From Vitrella brassicaformis CCMP3155 (lineage: Eukaryota; Protista; Chromerida), in the NCBI GenBank assembly GCA_001179505.1, contig CDMY01000419.1, positions 1 to 64,000 of the forward strand: a stretch of 64,000 nucleotides of DNA, written 5' to 3'. The notes beneath the pieces were generated by a model. It searched no databases, was not told where the DNA came from, and saw only the letters and a list, made by a program, of their open reading frames with translations. Of this stretch, positions 5,684-17,605 are shown one piece after another; positions within the stretch are counted from its first letter, which is position 1, and every line of letters starts with the position of its first letter. A program made the position numbers and the translations under genes.

Positions 5684-5990
5684 ATTGGTAGTATATTACA
5701 TATTGTCAAGACATCAGACTATGCATACACAAATCGGTCTTTCCGTGTCTCTCTGTGTGTATGTGTATGTGGGGCGTTCTCTACAGATGCATCAAGTAAC
5801 GATCGTGAAGTGATGAAATCGCATGCTCGCACTCGAACAAACATTGATGGCGTTCCAAAAATAAATAGATGTCGTCACTAGCTAGGCCAATCAAGGACAT
5901 GCTCACACACAAGATATGTCTCACAGCTCCCGCATCCATCCCACCAGCTGAAGCTGCACATCGATTACATCCAATCGGTCGATCAGCCAT

Positions 5991-7042
5991 CTATGCCACA
6001 TCCAGCGTATTGCAACACCCGCACAGAGGACCAGCATGAGAAGCATATGCATCGGCAGCACCAGTCTTAATGCCACCAGAAGGAGAGACCGGCCCGTCAG
6101 TGATATGAGGGGCGTCCACGGGGGCTTGTGCAGGGATGCTCGACCGTCGGGTGAGGCCGCTGTCGATCGGTTTAAGCCTCAAAGCTTGATCGACACCATC
6201 GACCTGGTGTGTGCCATAGAATGCGTTGACCGCCGTCGCCGATGCCCTTGGCTTGTTTGCCACCTCTTCATCTACCCTCGCACATTCGTCGCCATCATCG
6301 TGTCTCAACAACAACGTGTCTCCTTCTTCGGACGAAGCCTCAATATCATTTCTCGCCGACGCTCTCTCGCCGTCCCCCATTTCGATCCCCGACGGCTGCC
6401 GCATCTCATGAGAATTCTCATGGGCCAAAGCATTAGCCTCCATGTCGATTTTCTCCGTCTTTTCCTCGCGGTCACCATCTCCATCTGTCTCTTCCACCAT
6501 ATAGCCAAGCGTGCTTCCCTCAGTGCCAGGTTGGTCAGCCCTCCGACGGGAAACCGACAATCGCCGCCATACCCTTACCATGACAGAGCCACCTTTGTCG
6601 AGAGCGCCGCCTTTATCGCGAGCGCCTTGTTTACGCATAGAAATGAGACACGGGTTGTTGTGTAAGGTGACGGCCAGCCACAATCGATTCCGCACACGAA
6701 CATGTCGGGATCGAGATGCGTCCGTTGAGGGGACAGTCATGGTTGCGTCGTGGACGGTATCGTTGATGCACGTTAGGGCACAACGATAGGTGGGGTTGAA
6801 TTCCTCGTAGCACAATGTGCAGGCCGCCAGAAAGGCCTGGTGGGCAGCTGCAGATATGAGTGCACAGAGAAAATACCGTCGCCATGTGAACAATTACGTA
6901 TCCGTTCTTACAGTCAAGTGCAGCTGCAATGATGGGCGTTTTGTCGAAACTGAAACAGAAGAGCATCCCCGACACGGCGACCGTTACCACGCGAGTGACT
7001 CCCAATACAATGCCGAGAGGAAGGTTGACCAGCACCTGAATG

Positions 7043-7074
<32 letters not shown>

Positions 7075-10000
7075 TCAATGTGGGTCATTTTTAGATTCTT
7101 CCGTCTCGTCCCACACATACCATCAAGTCCACAAACGCATGAAACCACGCCGGTCGCGAGACATGAGCGCCTGATGGGCTGACCACTCGCTTAAACAGCG
7201 CTGCTACCAGCACCAGCTGGATGAAATAGAGTGTGATCAGGCCAAGAACATAGTTTCTGTATTCAACCATGGCTGCCAATATAAGCTTCTGGGCAAAGTA
7301 GAGGGTGATCGCGATCAGTGACAAGAAGGCCACGATGAACTCGGATATATAAAAGGCCATTGTCACGACCACAAAAGTTATCCCCAGCAGTTTTGTCCCG
7401 ACTAATAGGTGAGACACCACTTTCACCTCTCGCTCTGGGACACCAGCAGGAACAGCAGCCGGATGCCTCCGGCGATAAAGCTGCTGCATTTCCTGGGTGC
7501 GGATGGCGAGGGTGCCTTTGATGAGCCGCAGCATCGTGCGTCTATAGCCCTGCAGAATCCGCCAAAGCACAAGGCCGGAAGCACCGACGCCGACGGAAAT
7601 CCTGCGCATAGACAATTAAATCATATCAGCAAACGTGTAGATCGAGCATGAATGCGCCTTACGAAATATAGAGCATGACTGTCATGAAGTCGACAAAGTC
7701 AACGAGACGGGAAGCATACTGCAACGCCCACTCTGCTATGTCATCTAGATTAAAGATTTTGTCTGCGTCAGGATATAGACCCCGAAACACTGAGCACACA
7801 CACGAGAGACAGACATGATGTGTTGACACATGCATTCGTCATGATTACGGGTTTCAGCAAGCCGTTTAGCCTTCTCTTTATCATCATGGCCGAGATCGAC
7901 AGTCTCGAGTTGGTCGGACACCAGCATGTACTTGGAGCTAATGAAGATGCCCTGGTGAATGGCCGTGCGTATAGTCCAGGAGAGGGAAAAGGCGACGACT
8001 AGCAGAAAGAAAGTCGGAGTGTGCATTGGGATTGGAGGGGGCGGCAAAGCTGCTCCCTCTTGACCAGTCGGAACACCTCTGATGCGCCGCCGTACATAGT
8101 TACGGCACGAGACCTCCATATTGGCAAAGAACCAAGCCATGGTCGGATTAAACAGCGCCGTCAGGAGCACGAGGACGACATAGACCCCTCCCATAAATAA
8201 TGTGGTCGACGCTAGCATGACGTATGCGAGGGAGTAGAATGGCGCCAACTCTATGTCTCCTACTGCGAAGGGCCGGAGAAACGCTGAGACGTCCACCTGG
8301 AAGAAAAAGAGATAAATCATGCCCAGGGTGAGGACATAGAATATCCGTGGCGTGTAGATGTTGTTGGAGATGTTCATAAGAAGAGCCACAGAGAAGATGA
8401 CAGAGAAGAAGATCTGTCATGTGTGTGGAGAAGATGACAGAGAAGATCACCGAAGTTGAAGGCATCATGTGTGTGCACCAGCATGGCGAAATCGACGCTT
8501 CGGTGAAAGGAGGCATCGACGTGGCGAGTAAGCTGGCTCGTTAGGAGGTTGTGCCTCCATATGTCAAAAAGTGACCAGAGAAAGATCTACGTGAGCGCAC
8601 GCAGACAGAAGAAGAGACAGAGACATGCCTACTTCTGTCGTCTGTTGTGTATATATCCTACGATGAACAAGAGTATGCTGGTCCATCTGCTTTTTGTCCT
8701 TGTGCCACAAAGGTCCAAAAATACATACCCTGAGAAGACCGCAGACATACAGATACACAGACATGGGTCAATGCAGTGGCTCTCGCTTACGGTAGTTTGT
8801 GAACTTCAATCGTTCTTGGCTGTCACGACGGCAGCAGCGGCAAGCCAGACGATGGCGAAAGCAGTGACATACCAACAGACACATGTCGGTGAAACATACA
8901 GCAGGCGGGACGACATATCTGCTTCTCTCTTGAACAGTATCACAGGAGCGCGAAACTTGCAAGAGCTGGAAAGCCCGTCGAAAACAGCGCCGAATGACCG
9001 TGCGATCGTCTTGTGTAGCATCGTCATCGCTGCGATTAGGCCGTTGCTGTACCCCAGCAGTGTAGAGAGGGTAGTGTAGATCGATGCATCTCGTGATCAG
9101 CGAAGGCAGCGCTTTCTTTGCGACCATCCAGGCGAGAATTCTATGCGTGGAAAAAGCCAGAGCACCACAAAGGATGCCAAAGAAAATGAAGAAGGTCAGG
9201 ACGCCCTCCGTAGTAATCTTCAGCCCATATAACTCTTCGCTCTTGGTTAGCCACTTCACACCAGCCCTGAAAGCTTTAAGAGCCGCCTCCAGTGCCTTGA
9301 GAAGCACAGCATAGTCGACTATGTTGCCGTTCAATAGCGCTTCAAGGCCGTAATGGCTCAGGAGTATGTTCGTCAGGTGAGCGGCCTCCCCACTTTTGTC
9401 AGGCTCGTTCGAGAGCGGCTCTAATTCTTGGAGAGCGCCGTGGAGTTCGCTGGCAAGGGTGTGCGCGTCGGTGCCAGGCTCTTCGGATTTGAGGATCTCC
9501 GTCAGCGTTTTGTTGAGAAGAATGAAAACAGTGTCCGCAGAGTCATTCTGAGAGAGCAGGAGGGGGCCAAGGCCGCCAGCCAAGCTGTCTAGAGAAGAAT
9601 TCGTCGCCGGCGACGTCACATTGTCCAGCAAAACGCCTTCCAGCAGCTGCGCAGCTTGTGCAGAATTGATCGAATGCGAAATAAGCCTCCTTCTGCCATC
9701 GAATTCGGCCGGCATGATGTATTCGTGCAGAAGACTCACAGCCATAATGATGAAGTCACAGTTCCTGCAGCTCTTCTCCTCGTGGAAAAAGCTGAGCACA
9801 GCAATATTGAGAACAACGCTGAGGTGCTGCGCCGCCGTGGCATCAAGAAGAAGTGCCTCCAGGCTGTCGAAGAGAGCCCTGATTGCCATCCTTGTGCCGC
9901 CAGATGTTGTCCCGTCCACGAAAGGGCAGGAAGGCAGCAGTAGAGTAGGCAGATGGCCGATGAATGTATCAGCACCATGCTGCCACGTCGTGACATCCTC

Positions 10001-10961
10001 AAGAGCAGATGGCAGGAGAAATGCCGCAAGGCCCGCTGGCGAGGAAAGATGACTCCGCGCATCAGCAATGGCATTTACCACGGGACGGAACAGAGCCCTC
10101 ACCGCCTCTTCGGGTTTGGTCACACTGTGAGACATGATGAATAGCCTCCATTTTTCCAGCAAGGCTCTCACGGCAATCTCGCCGAGAAAATGTTTGTCAC
10201 CAGGTGCCAAGCTCATCTTGAAGACCACATGAAGGACCGAAAAAAAGTCTTGAGCCATGAGAGCTTCAATTGATGGTGCGCTGTCAAATGCGTCGGTAAA
10301 GGTCGAGGCCAGACCGTGGACGGCTATCGCGACAAGATCCGACTCGGCCTCTACACCGGTCACAGCCATCACAACGGTCCTCAGTATGTCGATCACCGTC
10401 AGTTCAAGCTCCTGTTGATCACCGGCATCATCGAGAAGAGCTCTCTTGACCAATAAACGTGTGTGGGTGTCAATAATAGCGCCGAAGGCAGCGAGAGCGA
10501 CAGCAGAAGAGGCGTTGTGACAGTCGTCGATTGTCCTCGTGTCCTCGAAAGCAACCGTGAAGAGCTTGGAAAGGTTTTCGACCGCGGTGTTGTTGATCCG
10601 CTGCATCGTTGTGTTGTCCAGAAAGGGTCTCGAGAGAGCGTTGAAGGACGGCGGGAGCAACCCACGAGCCATCGCAGCATCAGTCACATCATCAGCTGGT
10701 GCCGTGGTACTGTTGACCGTCGTATTGAGGAGGTCAAGTAGGAGGAAGGAATGAGCACGGTCCGTCTCATCTGCCAGAAGAGTCCCAAAAATGCGGTCAA
10801 GAAGAGCAAACAGGCTCCGATCACTGTTGCAACATATCTGAGGAGGAGAAAGGGAAGACGCCAAAGGGACTGTCACAGCTCACTTTGATATTGTTGCGTA
10901 CCTCTCTTGCGCATGTCAACAAGAGAATGGCAGGTATAAGTAAAGCACTTCGTCTTAACAT
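5991..10961 (-). CDS. STRA6-like: STRA6/RBP-receptor-like polytopic membrane protein with signal peptide and large N-terminal ectodomain (10 exons, 1461 aa)
   Basis: Exons 10961-10902, 10837-8900, 8819-8791, 8729-8633, 8586-8479, 8413-7849, 7789-7663, 7601-7121, 7035-6912, 6847-5991 all have GT-AG borders with consistent phase and total 4386 nt. Motifs YISISVGVGASGLVLWRILQGYRRTMLRLIKG, WFHAFVDLMVLVNLPLGIVLGVTRVV...DKT, LDSAHQAF...EEFNP and RVRNRLWLAVTLHNNPCLISMRK occur in the same order as the remembered STRA6/RBPR2 blocks. Confidence 0.8.
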
Positions 10962-11721
10962 CGTCGCCGCGTGGGAGAAGACGCCTAATGCGGACAAAAG
11001 AGATGCTTGTGTGACAATGATGAGGGCTCTCACCTGAGTGTTTCTCACACGAAGGGAGAGAGCGGTCTCATGAATTCACGGCCCCCACTTTTGGCCCCCA
11101 CGAGCGGAAACGCAAGCTTCGCATGAGCCTCCCTCCTCCGGTACCGAGCCCGATGGCAACTGCCGCACTATCGCCTGGTCACGACACCATCGACAAAGAC
11201 ACGACGTTGGAGGGGAAGGGGGAGAGACACAGAGGCTGCATTCCCAGGTTTCATGCCAACAGGATGGCGGGGTGGTGGATGGAGACTAACCGTGTGCACG
11301 AGAAACACAGGGACGACTTCAAGAAGCGTTGAGTGAATTGACTGACTTGAGGAGGTCTGCAAGTGCACTTGGAAGATGATACGATAAGTTGGTCCACACA
11401 CATGAGGCAGGCAGCGATTAGGACAAAGACCCATCCATCACACACACGCACACACACATGCACAGCAAGAATGCGATAGATAAAAGGTGGCGGAAAAAGG
11501 CGTTAACGGGCAGGCAGGCTGATGTGCGGAAAAGTGAGTTGGAGCCACGTCTTTCGTTGGCTCGTTCACACTTGCAGACGGATACACACACACACACACA
11601 CACACATGTGCAATAATGAATGGCGATCTGTACAGACACTCTCAAAGTGAGGCAATGAGAGTGAGAGAGAGGAGACAGTACTAGTAGTTTACCAGCCTGC
11701 CTGCCTGCGACCTTCACACCT

Positions 11722-12183: not shown

Positions 12184-13851
12184 TCAGAGGTCGTTGTCAC
12201 TGCAGCGTGGCTTGCCAGCGGTTGCTGCGGGATGGTACGTGCAGAAGTGCTGGTCCACCGAGGAATACAGCTGGCAATCGCCGCTTGGCAGATGGTTGAA
12301 CCACACGCAGCCATGCGTTGACTTGCAGCTGACACAAACAGCCAGACAGACAGACAAGACACAATGGTGCGGGGTTCCGTTGTGTGTAGTTGGATGCTTA
12401 CATGTTCTGGCATTGGTCTGCGCTGTCCACTTGCCGTCTGCTGTGCATCTGGCGTCCGGGGCACTTTTTGTTGAGCACATGGCAGCTGCGCCGGCACATG
12501 ACGAAGGAGCTGCACTGCACAAACGACGTGCTACACACGGTGAAGTACTCGGGGGCATCATACAACATACACTGCAGCCACACACACACAGCATCACAGA
12601 CACACAAAGCCAAAGACTCGTAGGGTCACTCTGTCTTTCCCCCTCCCTCCCTCCCAGGTTCACCTGAGGGGGCTGTGCGTCGCCATAAGGTGGGTCATAG
12701 ACTCTCAGCTCGAAGGCCTTGCACCGCTGGTCGTCGTGGCATGCAGCCTGGCACTGGTAGTACCCCTGGCTGCCGTACTCGCCGGCCCCCGACACCTGGA
12801 ACTCCACCAGCGTCGTGTCGGCCACCAGGCCGAAGTCAAGCACCGACCAGATGCCCCTCGCGGCCTCGCGGGCACCGGGGAAAGACGGAGAGCAGAACTT
12901 GTTCACGGGGAAGGGGGGAGCTGGCACACAACACAAGATATGCCAGACAGAGAATCAGACAGAAGGACAGACAGACAGACCGACAGACAGATGCAATCTA
13001 CACGCACACCCAGCCAGACGTACCAGTGTTTTGTCTGGTGCATTGGCTTGGTTTAGGTCCCGACACCTTGTCCTTGCAGCAGCCCCTCTCCCCCTGACGC
13101 CGCGCGCCCCTCGGTGCGTCCTTTCCCTTGAGCGAGCACCCCCACTCAGGCCCATAGCTCCAGTGGAAACAGCCGCTGGTGCTTTCGCACTCCTTGGAGC
13201 ATGCCTCCGCTGACTGGATGTGAGGCAGGTCGTGGAAGCCGTTCTTGCGGGGGAGATCGTGACCGAGATAGTCAATGCCCCACCGCCAACACGCAGCTGC
13301 ACATAGACAGACAGGCAGACAGACAGGCAGACAGACAGGCAGACAGACAGATGCCGACAATGGCACACGTGTGTCTGTCTGTTGAGGGTGTGTGCTGATT
13401 ATGTGCTCACCCCCTTGAGCGCAGTTGTAGCTGTCGTGTGTGCCTGACACCATGGCGGCCTTCCTGAGGGGGTAGTCCCTCAGCTGCAGGTCCCAGCCCA
13501 TCAGCACACAGCCAGTCTCGGGACTCCACGCCCACCGGGAGGCGCCGGGCGTCTCACGGGCAGCCATGCTGATCAATACGACAGGCAGATGCAGCCACAC
13601 ACCCGTTCGTCCACTCTACGCGTGTCTGTGTGTGTGTGTGTGTATGATTACCTGCATAGGCTTGGACTGGTGGCCTGTTTTGCCAGAGGGGCGTGCAGCT
13701 CGTCTCCCTCGAACTGCCGCACTCCCCACTCCCAGCAGCTGGACAGCTGCAGACGCCGACTCTTGTGGCCAATATCTGCCTGCCTTCGCAGCACCACCTG
13801 GGCATCAGCAGCAGCCACCAACAGCACCAGGGCCGCCAGAAAGGTCAGCAT
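12184..13851 (-). CDS. Secreted PAN/apple-domain protein (3-4 domains)
   Basis: Signal peptide MLTFLAALVLLVAAADA; apple motifs CWRWGIDYLGHDL...QSAEACSKECESTSGCFHWSY...GCSLK, YQCQAACHDDQRCKAFEL...CMLY, VDSADQCQNMCKSTHGCVWFNHLPSGDCQLY; GT-AG exons. No C-terminal TM segment. Confidence 0.85.
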
Positions 13852-14378
13852 CAGCAGACAAGTGATTGTGGAGGGACAGATAGGGGCTGGACGGAAAGGG
13901 GTGAGATCAGGTCAGTCAAGGCTCTGCTATACAAACAGTACACTACAGTCACAGATATTCAAACAGATCTAGGATGACCTTCGTCCGTAACAGACAAGAG
14001 AGAGACCTTCTCTCAAAAACAACTCGACGACTGCCGGTGGCTGTGGTCCGCTGCTTCCTCGGCGGCCGCTGCTAACCGACTGTCATTTTCTGACGCACGT
14101 CAAATCCGAGCTTGTCGCGACGTCGAGATTCGGCTCGCAAAAGGGCTCCGTACAGCTCGCACTTTGTAGACAAACCTGACGAAGAGAGTGTGAACAATGG
14201 CAGCAAAAGGAGATGAACGGCCTCCCGGCGTCGTCCAGGTCGTCCCTTTCCTGACGGCAGAAGAAGCGCCGCAGTAGACAAAGTCGTCTCTCAAGAGGCA
14301 GCGGAGTCGGTCAATCAGCCTCTCCAGACTCCCCCCTCCCTCCCCCCTCCCCCCTCTGTGCGTCCCTCTGGTAGCGCG

Positions 14379-16811
14379 ATGGATCCGTCGAGCGACTGTA
14401 TGATCCCGCCGCGCCTGCCGTGGGTTCACCAGCACGTGCAGATGGCCCCGCCGATATTCCTGGTGTTTTGGGGCTTCAGCACGGCGGTCACGCTGGTCGT
14501 GACGGTGGCCACGGTGCGATCGGTCTGGCGGCACTTCCTCGCCGGGGACAAGCTGCGGCAGCTCAAGGGGCTGGTGTTCATTCCCACCCATGCCAGGCTG
14601 CATATGCAGATTCTCGTGCTCTTCCCCATTCTCTCGATAACCTCCTGGTCGGTGCAGGCCTTTCCACCACACATACACACATACAGAGTGATATATGCGT
14701 GTGTGTGTGCGTGTGTTGTGCGTGAATGGTTGTCTGTCTGTCTTGTCTGTCAGGTTATCGCTGTTGATAATCCGTCAGGCGCTTTTATTGGAGCTGCTGG
14801 CGTACCTGTACAACATGGCGTGTCTCTTCTGGTTTTTTGAGCTGCTCGTGGAGCTCATGGGCGGCCCGGAGAGGGCGCTGGACCTGCTGCGCAAGGAGCC
14901 GCCTTTCAGGATCTACCAAGTGCCCCCGCTCATGTGCTGGAACGTGTTCGCCAGAAAACGGTTGGTCTGGAAAAATTAATTGTCAATCACCCAACCAACC
15001 ACAATGACCGACCGCTGGCTGTGTGTCTCTCTGTGTCTGTGCTTAAGGCATTTTGACCTGACGGACTTCCGCGTGACACGTTTCCTGCTGTGTCAGTACG
15101 CCATAGTGGGCCCGTTCATAGCGGTGACGGACGCGCTGAACGAGAGCTACTTTGACATCCTCCACTACGTCAGGATCCTGGTGACCCTCTTCTGCATGTG
15201 GGGCCTGGTGATGGTCTTCAAGGCGTCCAAGAGCTTGCTCAAGGAGTATCGGACACTGCAGAAATATGTCGTCATACAGGTGGGTGTGTGGGACACGAGT
15301 GTTGTCTTGAGATCTCACTGTGCACGTGATGTGTGTGGTGGTGCAGGTGACGGTGTTTCTGGTGAACTTCACGTCGATAATCCTTCGCCACCTCATACCG
15401 GGACACAACCGCGTCTACGACCAGGTAGGGTAGGCACACGCGCACGCAACACACGTAGGTGTCCTTCCTTGTCCATCCATCCATCCGGCTATTGATTGGT
15501 CCATCCATTGGTTCATTGGTATGTCAGTCTGTGATGAGCGAGGCGTGGGTGCATTTTATCTTCTCGGTGTCGATGCTGCCCCTCACTCTCATCGCCATCA
15601 ACGCATACCGAGTCGAGGACCTCTGGCTGCGCGAGAAGAGAGTACATGGGTGCGCACACACACACACAGCCAGCGCCCATTTTCTCTTGGCATTTCGATG
15701 CATCCATCCGTGTGTTGTCAGGCTGGATTGGCTGCAGACAGATGCGGACGGCGGGTCGCCTCCCTTGCCCGACGACGACATGTTCGCCAGAGAGGCGTTC
15801 CCCGGAGAGGAGGGCAAAGACAGCAGCAACAGGAACAACAATACCACCAGCTGTCCTGACGAGGTCTTCTCAGACACCGATTACGACGACAGACAGCCGC
15901 CTGCAGATGTGGTCAGTGAGAACCCATAAGATGCCATCCATCCATCCATCTGTGTGTGTGTGTGTGTGTGTGTGTTGTGTGTGTCTGACAGAGGAGCAAT
16001 GGGGCGATGGAGACGGTGTACGCCCCGAGCAACTACGGCGACGACCGTGCAGACTTCTTGAGCCCGTCGATCTCGCCCGTTTCCCGCAACACCACCACAC
16101 CCCGCGTCAATCATCACAAGGAGAGAGAGCCCATCTTCCTCCCTGGCGCAAGCCACACCACCAATGCCGACGACACTGAAGTACGCAAATGGGAAATGAC
16201 AACGCCCGGAATGTGTCTGTATCTGTCTGGATGGATGGGTGTGGGTGCAGGGGTGTTCTGATTGTGGAGGTCAGGAGGACAGCAGCAGCCCCGCCAGCGG
16301 AGCGACCATCTCGCCAAAACGGATTCGCCATCGACCACACAGAGACCACCACACACACACACACCCCCGCACCACCCATCCCCAGCCCCCCCAGGCACAC
16401 AGCCAGCACGGCGGCCACGACCATGACACCTCCCCCTTGAACGATGCCGCCGCCAGCAGCCATTCCTCCGGGCCTCCCAGGGCCGCCACCTCATGTATGG
16501 GAGCGGGTGATGAAGGCCCACATGTGCACGGGCATCATCACCACCATTTATCGGGAGTGGTGCCCTCCCTCCGCCGAATCCTGACGGCGCCTGAGAGGGA
16601 GAGCGACCCCCATCCCCACCACCACCCCCACCTTCACCACACCTGTGTGCAGCCCCACTCCCACCCCCCATTAGCTTACCAGCATCTCGGCCAGGGGGAG
16701 TCGCCCCGCAACGACGGTAGCAGTGACATGGTCTGTGTGGGCATACCACGACGGACATTGGGTGATGGTGACGGTGATGGCGAGGGTAGGGGAGGGGAGG
16801 GGGAGGTCTAG
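14379..16811 (+). CDS. Organic solute transporter alpha / TMEM184-like (Solute_trans_a) 7-TM protein with long His-rich C-tail
   Basis: Spliced sequence ILVLFPILSITSW|LSLLIIRQALLLELLAYLYNMACLFWFFELLVELMGG...PPLMCW...CQYAIVGPF...LFCMWGLVMVFKASKSLLKEYRTLQKYVVIQ matches the OST-alpha pattern (P+.S..S, Y....++.F..L+..++GG, P...C, Q+.++.P, K+..++). Confidence 0.8.
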
Positions 16812-17605
16812 CGCACAGAGAGGAGGCGTGTGGGGGGTCTTGTGCGAGTGTGTGTGTGTGTGTGTTCGCTTTTTTGATGGACCATGCATGAATGACCGTC
16901 ATCATAGCAGTGTCTCTCTCTCGGTTTGATGGCACGGTGGTGTCCGTGGCGTCCGTGGCGTGTTTATGCGTTGGCGAGGGACACAGATGAATGAGGGTTT
17001 TGCTCGATTATTTCCTCCTCCTTCTCCTCCTATCTATCTACTATATGCCTGTCTGTGTATCTTGATTGATGATGGGATAGGATAGCTCCTGCTCTTGCTG
17101 CTGCTGTCCACTTTGTCATGTCCATATGTGTGCGCTGCGCCTGTGTGTGTGTTGGTTTGGCTTTGTTGATCGATCCAATGGGATGCCCAAAAACAGAAGT
17201 AATGAATCTGCGTAGCGTAGCCGGTGTAGCTGGCAGTGTCTGTGTTGGGCGACTGTGTGGGTGGGAGGGTGATGCGTGTACAGATAGCAGATATCATTTG
17301 TACCTGTCTGATGGACTGACTCGTCAGGTGCGGTGCCATGTCATGTCATGTGTGCAGATTCCTTCACTCTCTCATCCGCTCGGTCAACCGACATGTACTT
17401 CACGTGATGGCATCTTTGGACAGTTCGTCCGGCTCCACATCACATGACATCACATCACATCGCATCACACCGCATCACACAGCCAAAACTCCCTCCCTCT
17501 GTCTGGGATATCTTACACACACATACACGCACCTCTCTCTCTCTCTCTCTCGTGTGTGGGTGTGGTCTATCCACCCACTCTTCCTTCCAGCCATCCATCC
17601 TTCAG

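Follow-up and report, generated by a model that had tools for sequence, protein, structure and literature searches.

We analysed a window of 64,000 nucleotides (nt) from Vitrella brassicaformis CCMP3155, comprising positions 1 to 64,000 of the forward strand of contig CDMY01000419.1 (assembly GCA_001179505.1). Vitrella is a free-living photosynthetic chromerid alveolate and a cousin of the apicomplexans. On its minus strand the window carries a gene of nine coding exons at 5991-10961, whose 5' end adds one exon of 5' untranslated region (UTR). The gene is real and transcribed, and its product is, as judged by its sequence, a very divergent non-animal member of the STRA6/RBP_receptor family from the seventh transmembrane segment (TM7) to about residue 1267, set in a new domain architecture. 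STRA6 itself is the vitamin A receptor of animals, through which retinol is taken up.

Exon joints were obtained from Logan contigs of public runs placed on window positions 5950-11000. A spliced RNA contig of 5194 nt (run X5) carries the gene, and partial contigs came from runs X1 and X7. The contigs join 6847/6912, 7033/7119, 7600/7662, 7789/7849, 8413/8479, 8586/8662, 8728/8790, and 10837/10902. Once joint ambiguities of 1-2 nt had been resolved, all eight introns were of the GT..AG type with lengths of 59-85 nt. The coding sequence totals 4434 nt from the ATG at 10961 to a TAG stop at 5991-5993, corresponding to 1478 amino acids (aa). Translation of RNA contig ERR558152_15884 yielded exactly this protein, and the spliced product is letter for letter identical to the database protein P0001 of V. 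brassicaformis CCMP3155. The public record of P0001 reads 'unnamed protein product [Vitrella brassicaformis CCMP3155]' and bears a precomputed label of Pfam family PF14752 (RBP_receptor). The exons are arranged as follows.

10902..10986, minus strand: exon 1, with 5'UTR at 10962-10986, the ATG at 10961 and the signal peptide (aa 1-20), coding at 10902-10961; placed by RNA joints, a loose end at 10986 and translation
8791..10837, minus strand: exon 2, ectodomain (aa 21-563; 9209-10837), TM1 (aa 564-586; 9140-9208) and most of the loop at aa 587-717
8662..8729, minus strand: exon 3, end of this loop and start of TM2; joints 8586>8662 and 8728>8790 (cut +1) in RNA contigs X1 and X5
8479..8586, minus strand: exon 4, TM2 and the TM2-TM3 loop; RNA joints
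7849..8413, minus strand: exon 5, TM3-TM6 followed by the opening stretch of the extracellular TM6-TM7 loop; RNA joints and hydropathy
7663..7789, minus strand: exon 6, second stretch of the TM6-TM7 loop, then the beginning of TM7; Pfam match from aa 980 on
7121..7601, minus strand: exon 7, TM7 (block 1), a basic cytosolic loop, then TM8 and TM9, and finally the beginning of the intramembrane helix; RNA joints
6912..7035, minus strand: exon 8, main part of the long intramembrane helix with the LVNLPLGIVLGVTRVV motif; the helix as a whole is aa 1143-1180, window 6952-7150
5991..6847, minus strand: exon 9, coding at 5994-6847 plus TAG; block 3, the BP2-like helix (aa 1244-1266; ~6630-6698) and the acidic tail

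An initial annotation, made from the letters of the window, had placed a STRA6-like membrane core at 5991-8729. The limits of this span coincide exactly with the stop codon and the first base of exon 3, but it holds seven exons instead of the eight proposed, and the gene continues to the ATG. The proposal had been built on four ordered blocks in the spliced protein, all of which are present in the RNA-supported product:

block 1: YISISVGVGASGLVLWRILQGYRRTMLRLIKG, aa 990-1021, across the exon 6/7 junction
block 2: VSRPAWFHAFVDLMVLVNLPLGIVLGVTRVV..SG..F..DKT, aa 1139-1185, across the exon 7/8 junction
block 3: LDSAHQAFLAAC..CYEEFNP, aa 1192-1212, across the exon 8/9 junction
block 4: RVRNRLWLAVTLHNNPCLISMRK, aa 1244-1266, in exon 9

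The junctions spanned by blocks 1-3 are borne out by the RNA.

PF14752 was the only Pfam family found on the whole protein, matching aa 980-1267 to profile positions 310-605 of 605 with 27.1 bits (E 2.2e-6). This exceeds the curated gathering cut-off of 25 bits, and the RBP_receptor match anticipated in the initial annotation was thus obtained. The score was then traced to segments of the protein. Taken alone, aa 980-1275 scored 30.2 bits (E 2.6e-7; profile 321-605) and aa 1136-1275 scored 25.4 bits, with TM7-TM9 contributing about 5 bits. The segment following the membrane part, aa 1190-1275 with block 3 and the BP2-like helix, reached 20.8 bits by itself (E 1.8e-4; profile 531-605), and the intramembrane helix (aa 1136-1200) reached 11.9 bits (profile 463-503). 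The homology had been described as invisible in the raw open reading frames; this was not borne out, as the last exon by itself matches PF14752 weakly and the public record is already labelled. A Vitrella paralogue, P0002, matched the same profile region independently (E 0.002-0.005). A search was also made the other way, with a profile of two Vitrella sequences covering the C-terminal part against 177,635 distinct PDB sequences, and zebrafish STRA6 (5sy1_A) ranked first with an E of 0.033; a longer Vitrella profile gave 5sy1_A an E of 0.31. The 5sy1_A alignment comprises two collinear stretches, zebrafish 409-527 with Vitrella ~1063-1183 and zebrafish 602-628 with Vitrella ~1247-1273. Using an alignment-free language model (ESM Atlas), the 19 nearest clusters to aa 700-1275 were all PF14752/STRA6 (score 0.93, 212 of 256 features). 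Based on these results, the C-terminal module is very probably homologous to STRA6.

By sequence, the best-conserved elements are the intramembrane helix and the BP2 helix. In STRA6 the long horizontal intramembrane helix forms the dimer core (PMC5954442). Of the 36 residues around the Vitrella motif LVN...G.VLG..RVV, about one-third are identical to zebrafish STRA6 by hand count on the 5sy1_A alignment. BP2 is the STRA6 helix that provides the main, sub-nanomolar contact to Ca2+-calmodulin, represented by peptides of zebrafish residues 600-626 and sheep residues 625-656 (PMC12714816). Counted by hand against these peptides, the Vitrella helix is identical at 11 of 26 positions to zebrafish BP2 and at 11 of 22 positions to sheep BP2. 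The calmodulin-binding motif is hence conserved at the sequence level in aa 1244-1266, and counterparts of blocks 2 and 4 are seen in zebrafish and sheep STRA6 (alignment output and published peptides). The maintenance of the dimer-core helix and the calmodulin-binding helix in Vitrella suggests that both belong to an ancient, mechanistically essential core of the family.

Hydropathy analysis of the product predicted a signal peptide, TM1 at aa 564-586, TM2-TM6 within aa 718-912, TM7 at aa 981-1005, two long helices at aa 1060-1093 and 1099-1130, and a hydrophobic helix of 38 residues at aa 1143-1180. Residue N441 of zebrafish STRA6 lies in the TM8-TM9 loop (PMC5954442) and aligns to a loop of five residues in Vitrella, aa 1094-1098. 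Because this alignment places the TM8-TM9 loop at 1094-1098, we count nine transmembrane segments and one intramembrane helix. Loops on the predicted cytosolic side carry more basic than acidic residues (K+R/D+E of 24/12, 5/2, and 11/3), and the parts predicted to lie outside are net acidic (37/68 in the ectodomain and 8/13 in the TM6-TM7 loop). All 10 N-glycosylation sequons in the N-terminal 563 residues fall outside in the predicted topology. This pattern fits a protein with its N-terminus outside and its C-terminus in the cytosol, with a predicted layout of nine transmembrane segments plus an intramembrane helix that matches that of STRA6. The parts would thus be ordered as a signal peptide, a helical, N-glycosylated ectodomain of ~540 aa, the nine transmembrane segments, the intramembrane helix, cytosolic helices, and an acidic tail, in a predicted type I orientation. 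The ectodomain (aa 21-563) is rich in Leu and Ala. No Pfam family was found in it, and its only detectable relative is a second Vitrella database protein, P0004, with 42% identity. The loop between TM1 and TM2 (131 aa; aa 587-717) is Cys/Arg-rich and predicted to be cytosolic, and the C-terminal tail of 210 aa is acidic and of low complexity.

Several results weigh against a reading in which the entire core is that of a STRA6-type receptor. Single-sequence phmmer searches with exon pieces and with aa 700-1275 did not reach STRA6 among the PDB sequences, and the relationship is therefore remote. Block 1 (aa 975-1060) and TM8-TM9 (aa 1055-1140), each searched alone, gave zero PF14752 signal. For aa 555-985, which comprises TM1-TM6 and the region of the STRA6 juxtamembrane helix and RBP-binding lid loop, no Pfam family was found at E ≤ 10. 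AlphaFold2 models built on alignments of two to three sequences had a mean predicted local distance difference test score (pLDDT) of 36.2 (aa 555-1275) and 41.0 (aa 885-1275) and were unusable; a Foldseek search of the PDB with the former, uninformative at such quality, returned nothing at E ≤ 0.001, with 5sy1_A appearing only at rank 12 (E 2.3). Vitrella is further not known to have an RBP4-type carrier, and any substrate is hence a guess. On the level of sequence, the statistically secure homology is that of the last ~140 residues of the core, from the intramembrane helix through the BP2 helix. Of the initial annotation's divergent non-animal STRA6 homologue, the relationship itself stands on PF14752, the top reverse PDB match and the ESM neighbours, but its significant signal is confined to this stretch. 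Similarly, the STRA6-like membrane core was recovered in its C-terminal part, while the transmembrane bundle at aa 555-985 lacks a profile match and it is topology only that points to a STRA6 fold of the whole core. The top 13 language-model neighbours of aa 700-985 were STRA6 clusters, at a sub-threshold score of 0.76 that serves as a lead only.

Vitrella possesses a full-length paralogue on contig CDMY01000362.1 of the same assembly (L001:5365-9980), collinear with our product over aa 32-1334. Its annotation divides it into two genes, P0004 of 710 aa and P0002 of 572 aa. TM2-TM4 (L001:7670-8014) are contained in neither of the two, and the TM7 exon (L001:8667-8804) is absent from P0002. P0004 and P0002 most likely represent one mis-split gene. 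From the signal peptide as far as the BP2 helix the paralogues are built alike; the second copy has a different C-terminal tail. Identity is highest from TM7 through the intramembrane helix (62-65% in aa 977-1194), and amounts to 55% in the TM6-TM7 loop region (aa 821-955) and 42% in the ectodomain. The UniRef names 'Ion transport domain-containing protein' for P0001 and 'MMS19...' for P0004 are unsupported, as Pfam found neither an ion-transport domain in the former nor an MMS19 domain in the latter.

To our reading, the whole is best explained as a polytopic glycoprotein with a STRA6-family C-terminal part, putatively acting as a dimerising, calmodulin-binding lipophile exchanger with a fused ectodomain, and we consider this explanation reasonably probable. 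By analogy with STRA6, its intramembrane helices would hold a dimer together, and the BP2-like helix would be where calmodulin binds. The protein might then mediate the energy-independent exchange of a lipophilic small molecule, such as a retinoid, a carotenoid derivative or a sterol, between a donor outside the cell and the membrane. The roles of the soluble carrier RBP4 and the docking lid are plausibly taken over by the fused ectodomain together with the conserved TM6-TM7 loop. Lipophile exchange as the function, drawn as it is from the animal protein, is put forward tentatively, with somewhat less than an even chance of being correct, and the ancient lipophile uptake channel of the initial annotation is likewise a putative role.

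Alternatively, the C-terminal homology to STRA6 could be genuine and the function a different one, namely that of a surface receptor or an adhesion/signalling protein, with the ectodomain as the sensor for a ligand outside the cell and the STRA6-like module as no more than a dimerising, calmodulin-regulated scaffold that does not transport lipid. Such a role would be in line with the 540-aa ectodomain and the 210-aa acidic tail, which have no STRA6 counterpart, with an N-terminal transmembrane bundle that is not recognisably STRA6-like, and with conservation that peaks in the dimer-core and calmodulin helices and not in any known ligand site. However, TM7-TM9, which line the cleft in STRA6, are collinear with STRA6 and are the part most conserved between the paralogues, and Pfam found no signalling domains on the protein. 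We regard this alternative as unlikely, although it deserves to be taken seriously. The resemblance might also be spurious, with hydrophobic composition and a short chance motif lifting an unrelated multi-spanning protein past the Pfam threshold. The scores exceed the cut-off by just 2-5 bits, the E values of the reverse PDB searches are marginal (0.033-0.31), and the predicted structures (pLDDT 36 and 41) provide no confirmation. Yet most of the score (20.8 bits) stems from the soluble post-membrane segment including the BP2 helix and not from transmembrane helices, the matches are collinear in both directions, the paralogue matches the profile in the same place, the neighbours given by the independent language model are without exception STRA6, and the topology agrees, which makes a chance resemblance improbable.

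An origin of the gene from an animal has to be weighed as well, either by contamination, for example from a coral host, or by recent transfer. The STRA6 family is otherwise animal, and Vitrella was isolated from coral, which would speak for such an origin. In conflict with this, the gene has unrelated genes as neighbours on a Vitrella contig of 81 kb and carries introns of 59-85 nt, a second full-length copy exists on another contig (101 kb) of this assembly, and the similarity to animal proteins is so low that pairwise searches miss it. We thus consider contamination or recent transfer very improbable; an ancient transfer from an animal is conceivable.

Compared with STRA6 (zebrafish 5SY1, human and sheep), the Vitrella protein is alike in its PF14752 match at profile ~310-605, in the collinear TM8, TM9 and long intramembrane helix, in a BP2-type helix of the pattern R.R....L..TL.NNP.L...RK, and, by hydropathy, in an outside N-terminus with nine transmembrane segments plus the intramembrane helix. 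In contrast, identity is ~20% or lower with no pairwise match, the N-terminal transmembrane bundle and the RBP-binding lid loop are unrecognisable, and the Vitrella protein adds a signal peptide, the 540-aa ectodomain, the 131-aa Cys/Arg-rich TM1-TM2 loop, and the 210-aa acidic tail. STRA6L/RBPR2 and the invertebrate RBP_receptor proteins (amphioxus Stra6l, PMC3184775; rotifer clusters) belong to the same Pfam family, but all of these are animal proteins of ~550-830 aa without a large N-terminal ectodomain. They demonstrate that the family is wider than vertebrate STRA6 and includes proteins whose ligand specificity is different or not known. STRA6 has been termed animal-specific in a cross-kingdom survey of transportomes (PMC5977736), and outside vertebrates only Stra6l-type genes occur according to the amphioxus study (PMC3184775). 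In the literature searched, we found no mention of a non-animal STRA6 relative and no papers linking STRA6 to Vitrella, Toxoplasma biology, dinoflagellates or diatoms. The automatic PF14752 label was already public, which tempers the novelty. The Vitrella relative offers an RBP-independent system for asking what the STRA6 core does.

With regard to distribution, a phmmer search of the TM7-TM9 exon against 1.84 billion representatives returned nothing beyond the gene itself, its paralogue P0002, and a single spurious repeat protein; at the sensitivity of this search, no close relatives were detectable in other alveolates. Word-index searches with the core, the two-sequence profile and the ectodomain returned Vitrella proteins only, and metagenome scans found no relatives. 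An ESM Atlas cluster of 54 mostly diatom proteins (990 aa) had 206 of 256 features in common with the Vitrella core (score 0.77), and it is possible, judging from these features, that this diatom-rich cluster represents a further non-animal branch of the family. In a broader and rather doubtful scenario, STRA6-type calmodulin-gated lipophile exchangers would be older than the animals. Chromerid algae would have kept them as a small gene family whose members carry fused ectodomains, and diatoms may have kept them too. The ancestral substrate would be an algal carotenoid, a retinoid or a sterol, and docking of RBP4 in vertebrates would have been added late, in place of an ectodomain that was once part of the protein.

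Some further features of the locus were observed. The 3'UTR extends below window position 5950. At the 5' end, the RNA contig departs from the genome at 10986 and resumes matching at ~11047-11076, which places an intron of ~60 nt at ~10987-11046 within the 5'UTR and indicates a tenth, non-coding exon upstream of the intron starting at ~10987. An (AC)n microsatellite at 7040-7078 makes up half of the 85-nt intron 7 (7036-7120); the joint of this intron was inferred from adjacent coordinates of the X5 contig, with the repeat lying inside the intron. An alternative frame of exon 2 is open at 8809-9096, where it overlaps the region of the Cys/Arg-rich loop and, with its hydrophobic stretch, resembles a transmembrane protein (…WYVTAFAIVWLAAAAVVTA…). 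No RNA splice uses this frame, and it was rejected as the RNA contig keeps the long frame of exon 2 open to 8791; the open frame at 8809-9096 is probably due to chance.

The immediate upstream neighbour, at window ~12187-13854 on the minus strand (L002:7111-8778), encodes 400 aa with faint PAN-domain matches only. The next gene but one, at window ~14382-16814 on the plus strand (L002:4151-6583), encodes a protein of 615 aa with the Pfam family Solute_trans_a (PF03619), which we take to be the OST-alpha/TMEM184 family of organic-solute transporters. The occurrence of two putative lipophile-handling membrane proteins within 6 kb is probably a coincidence.

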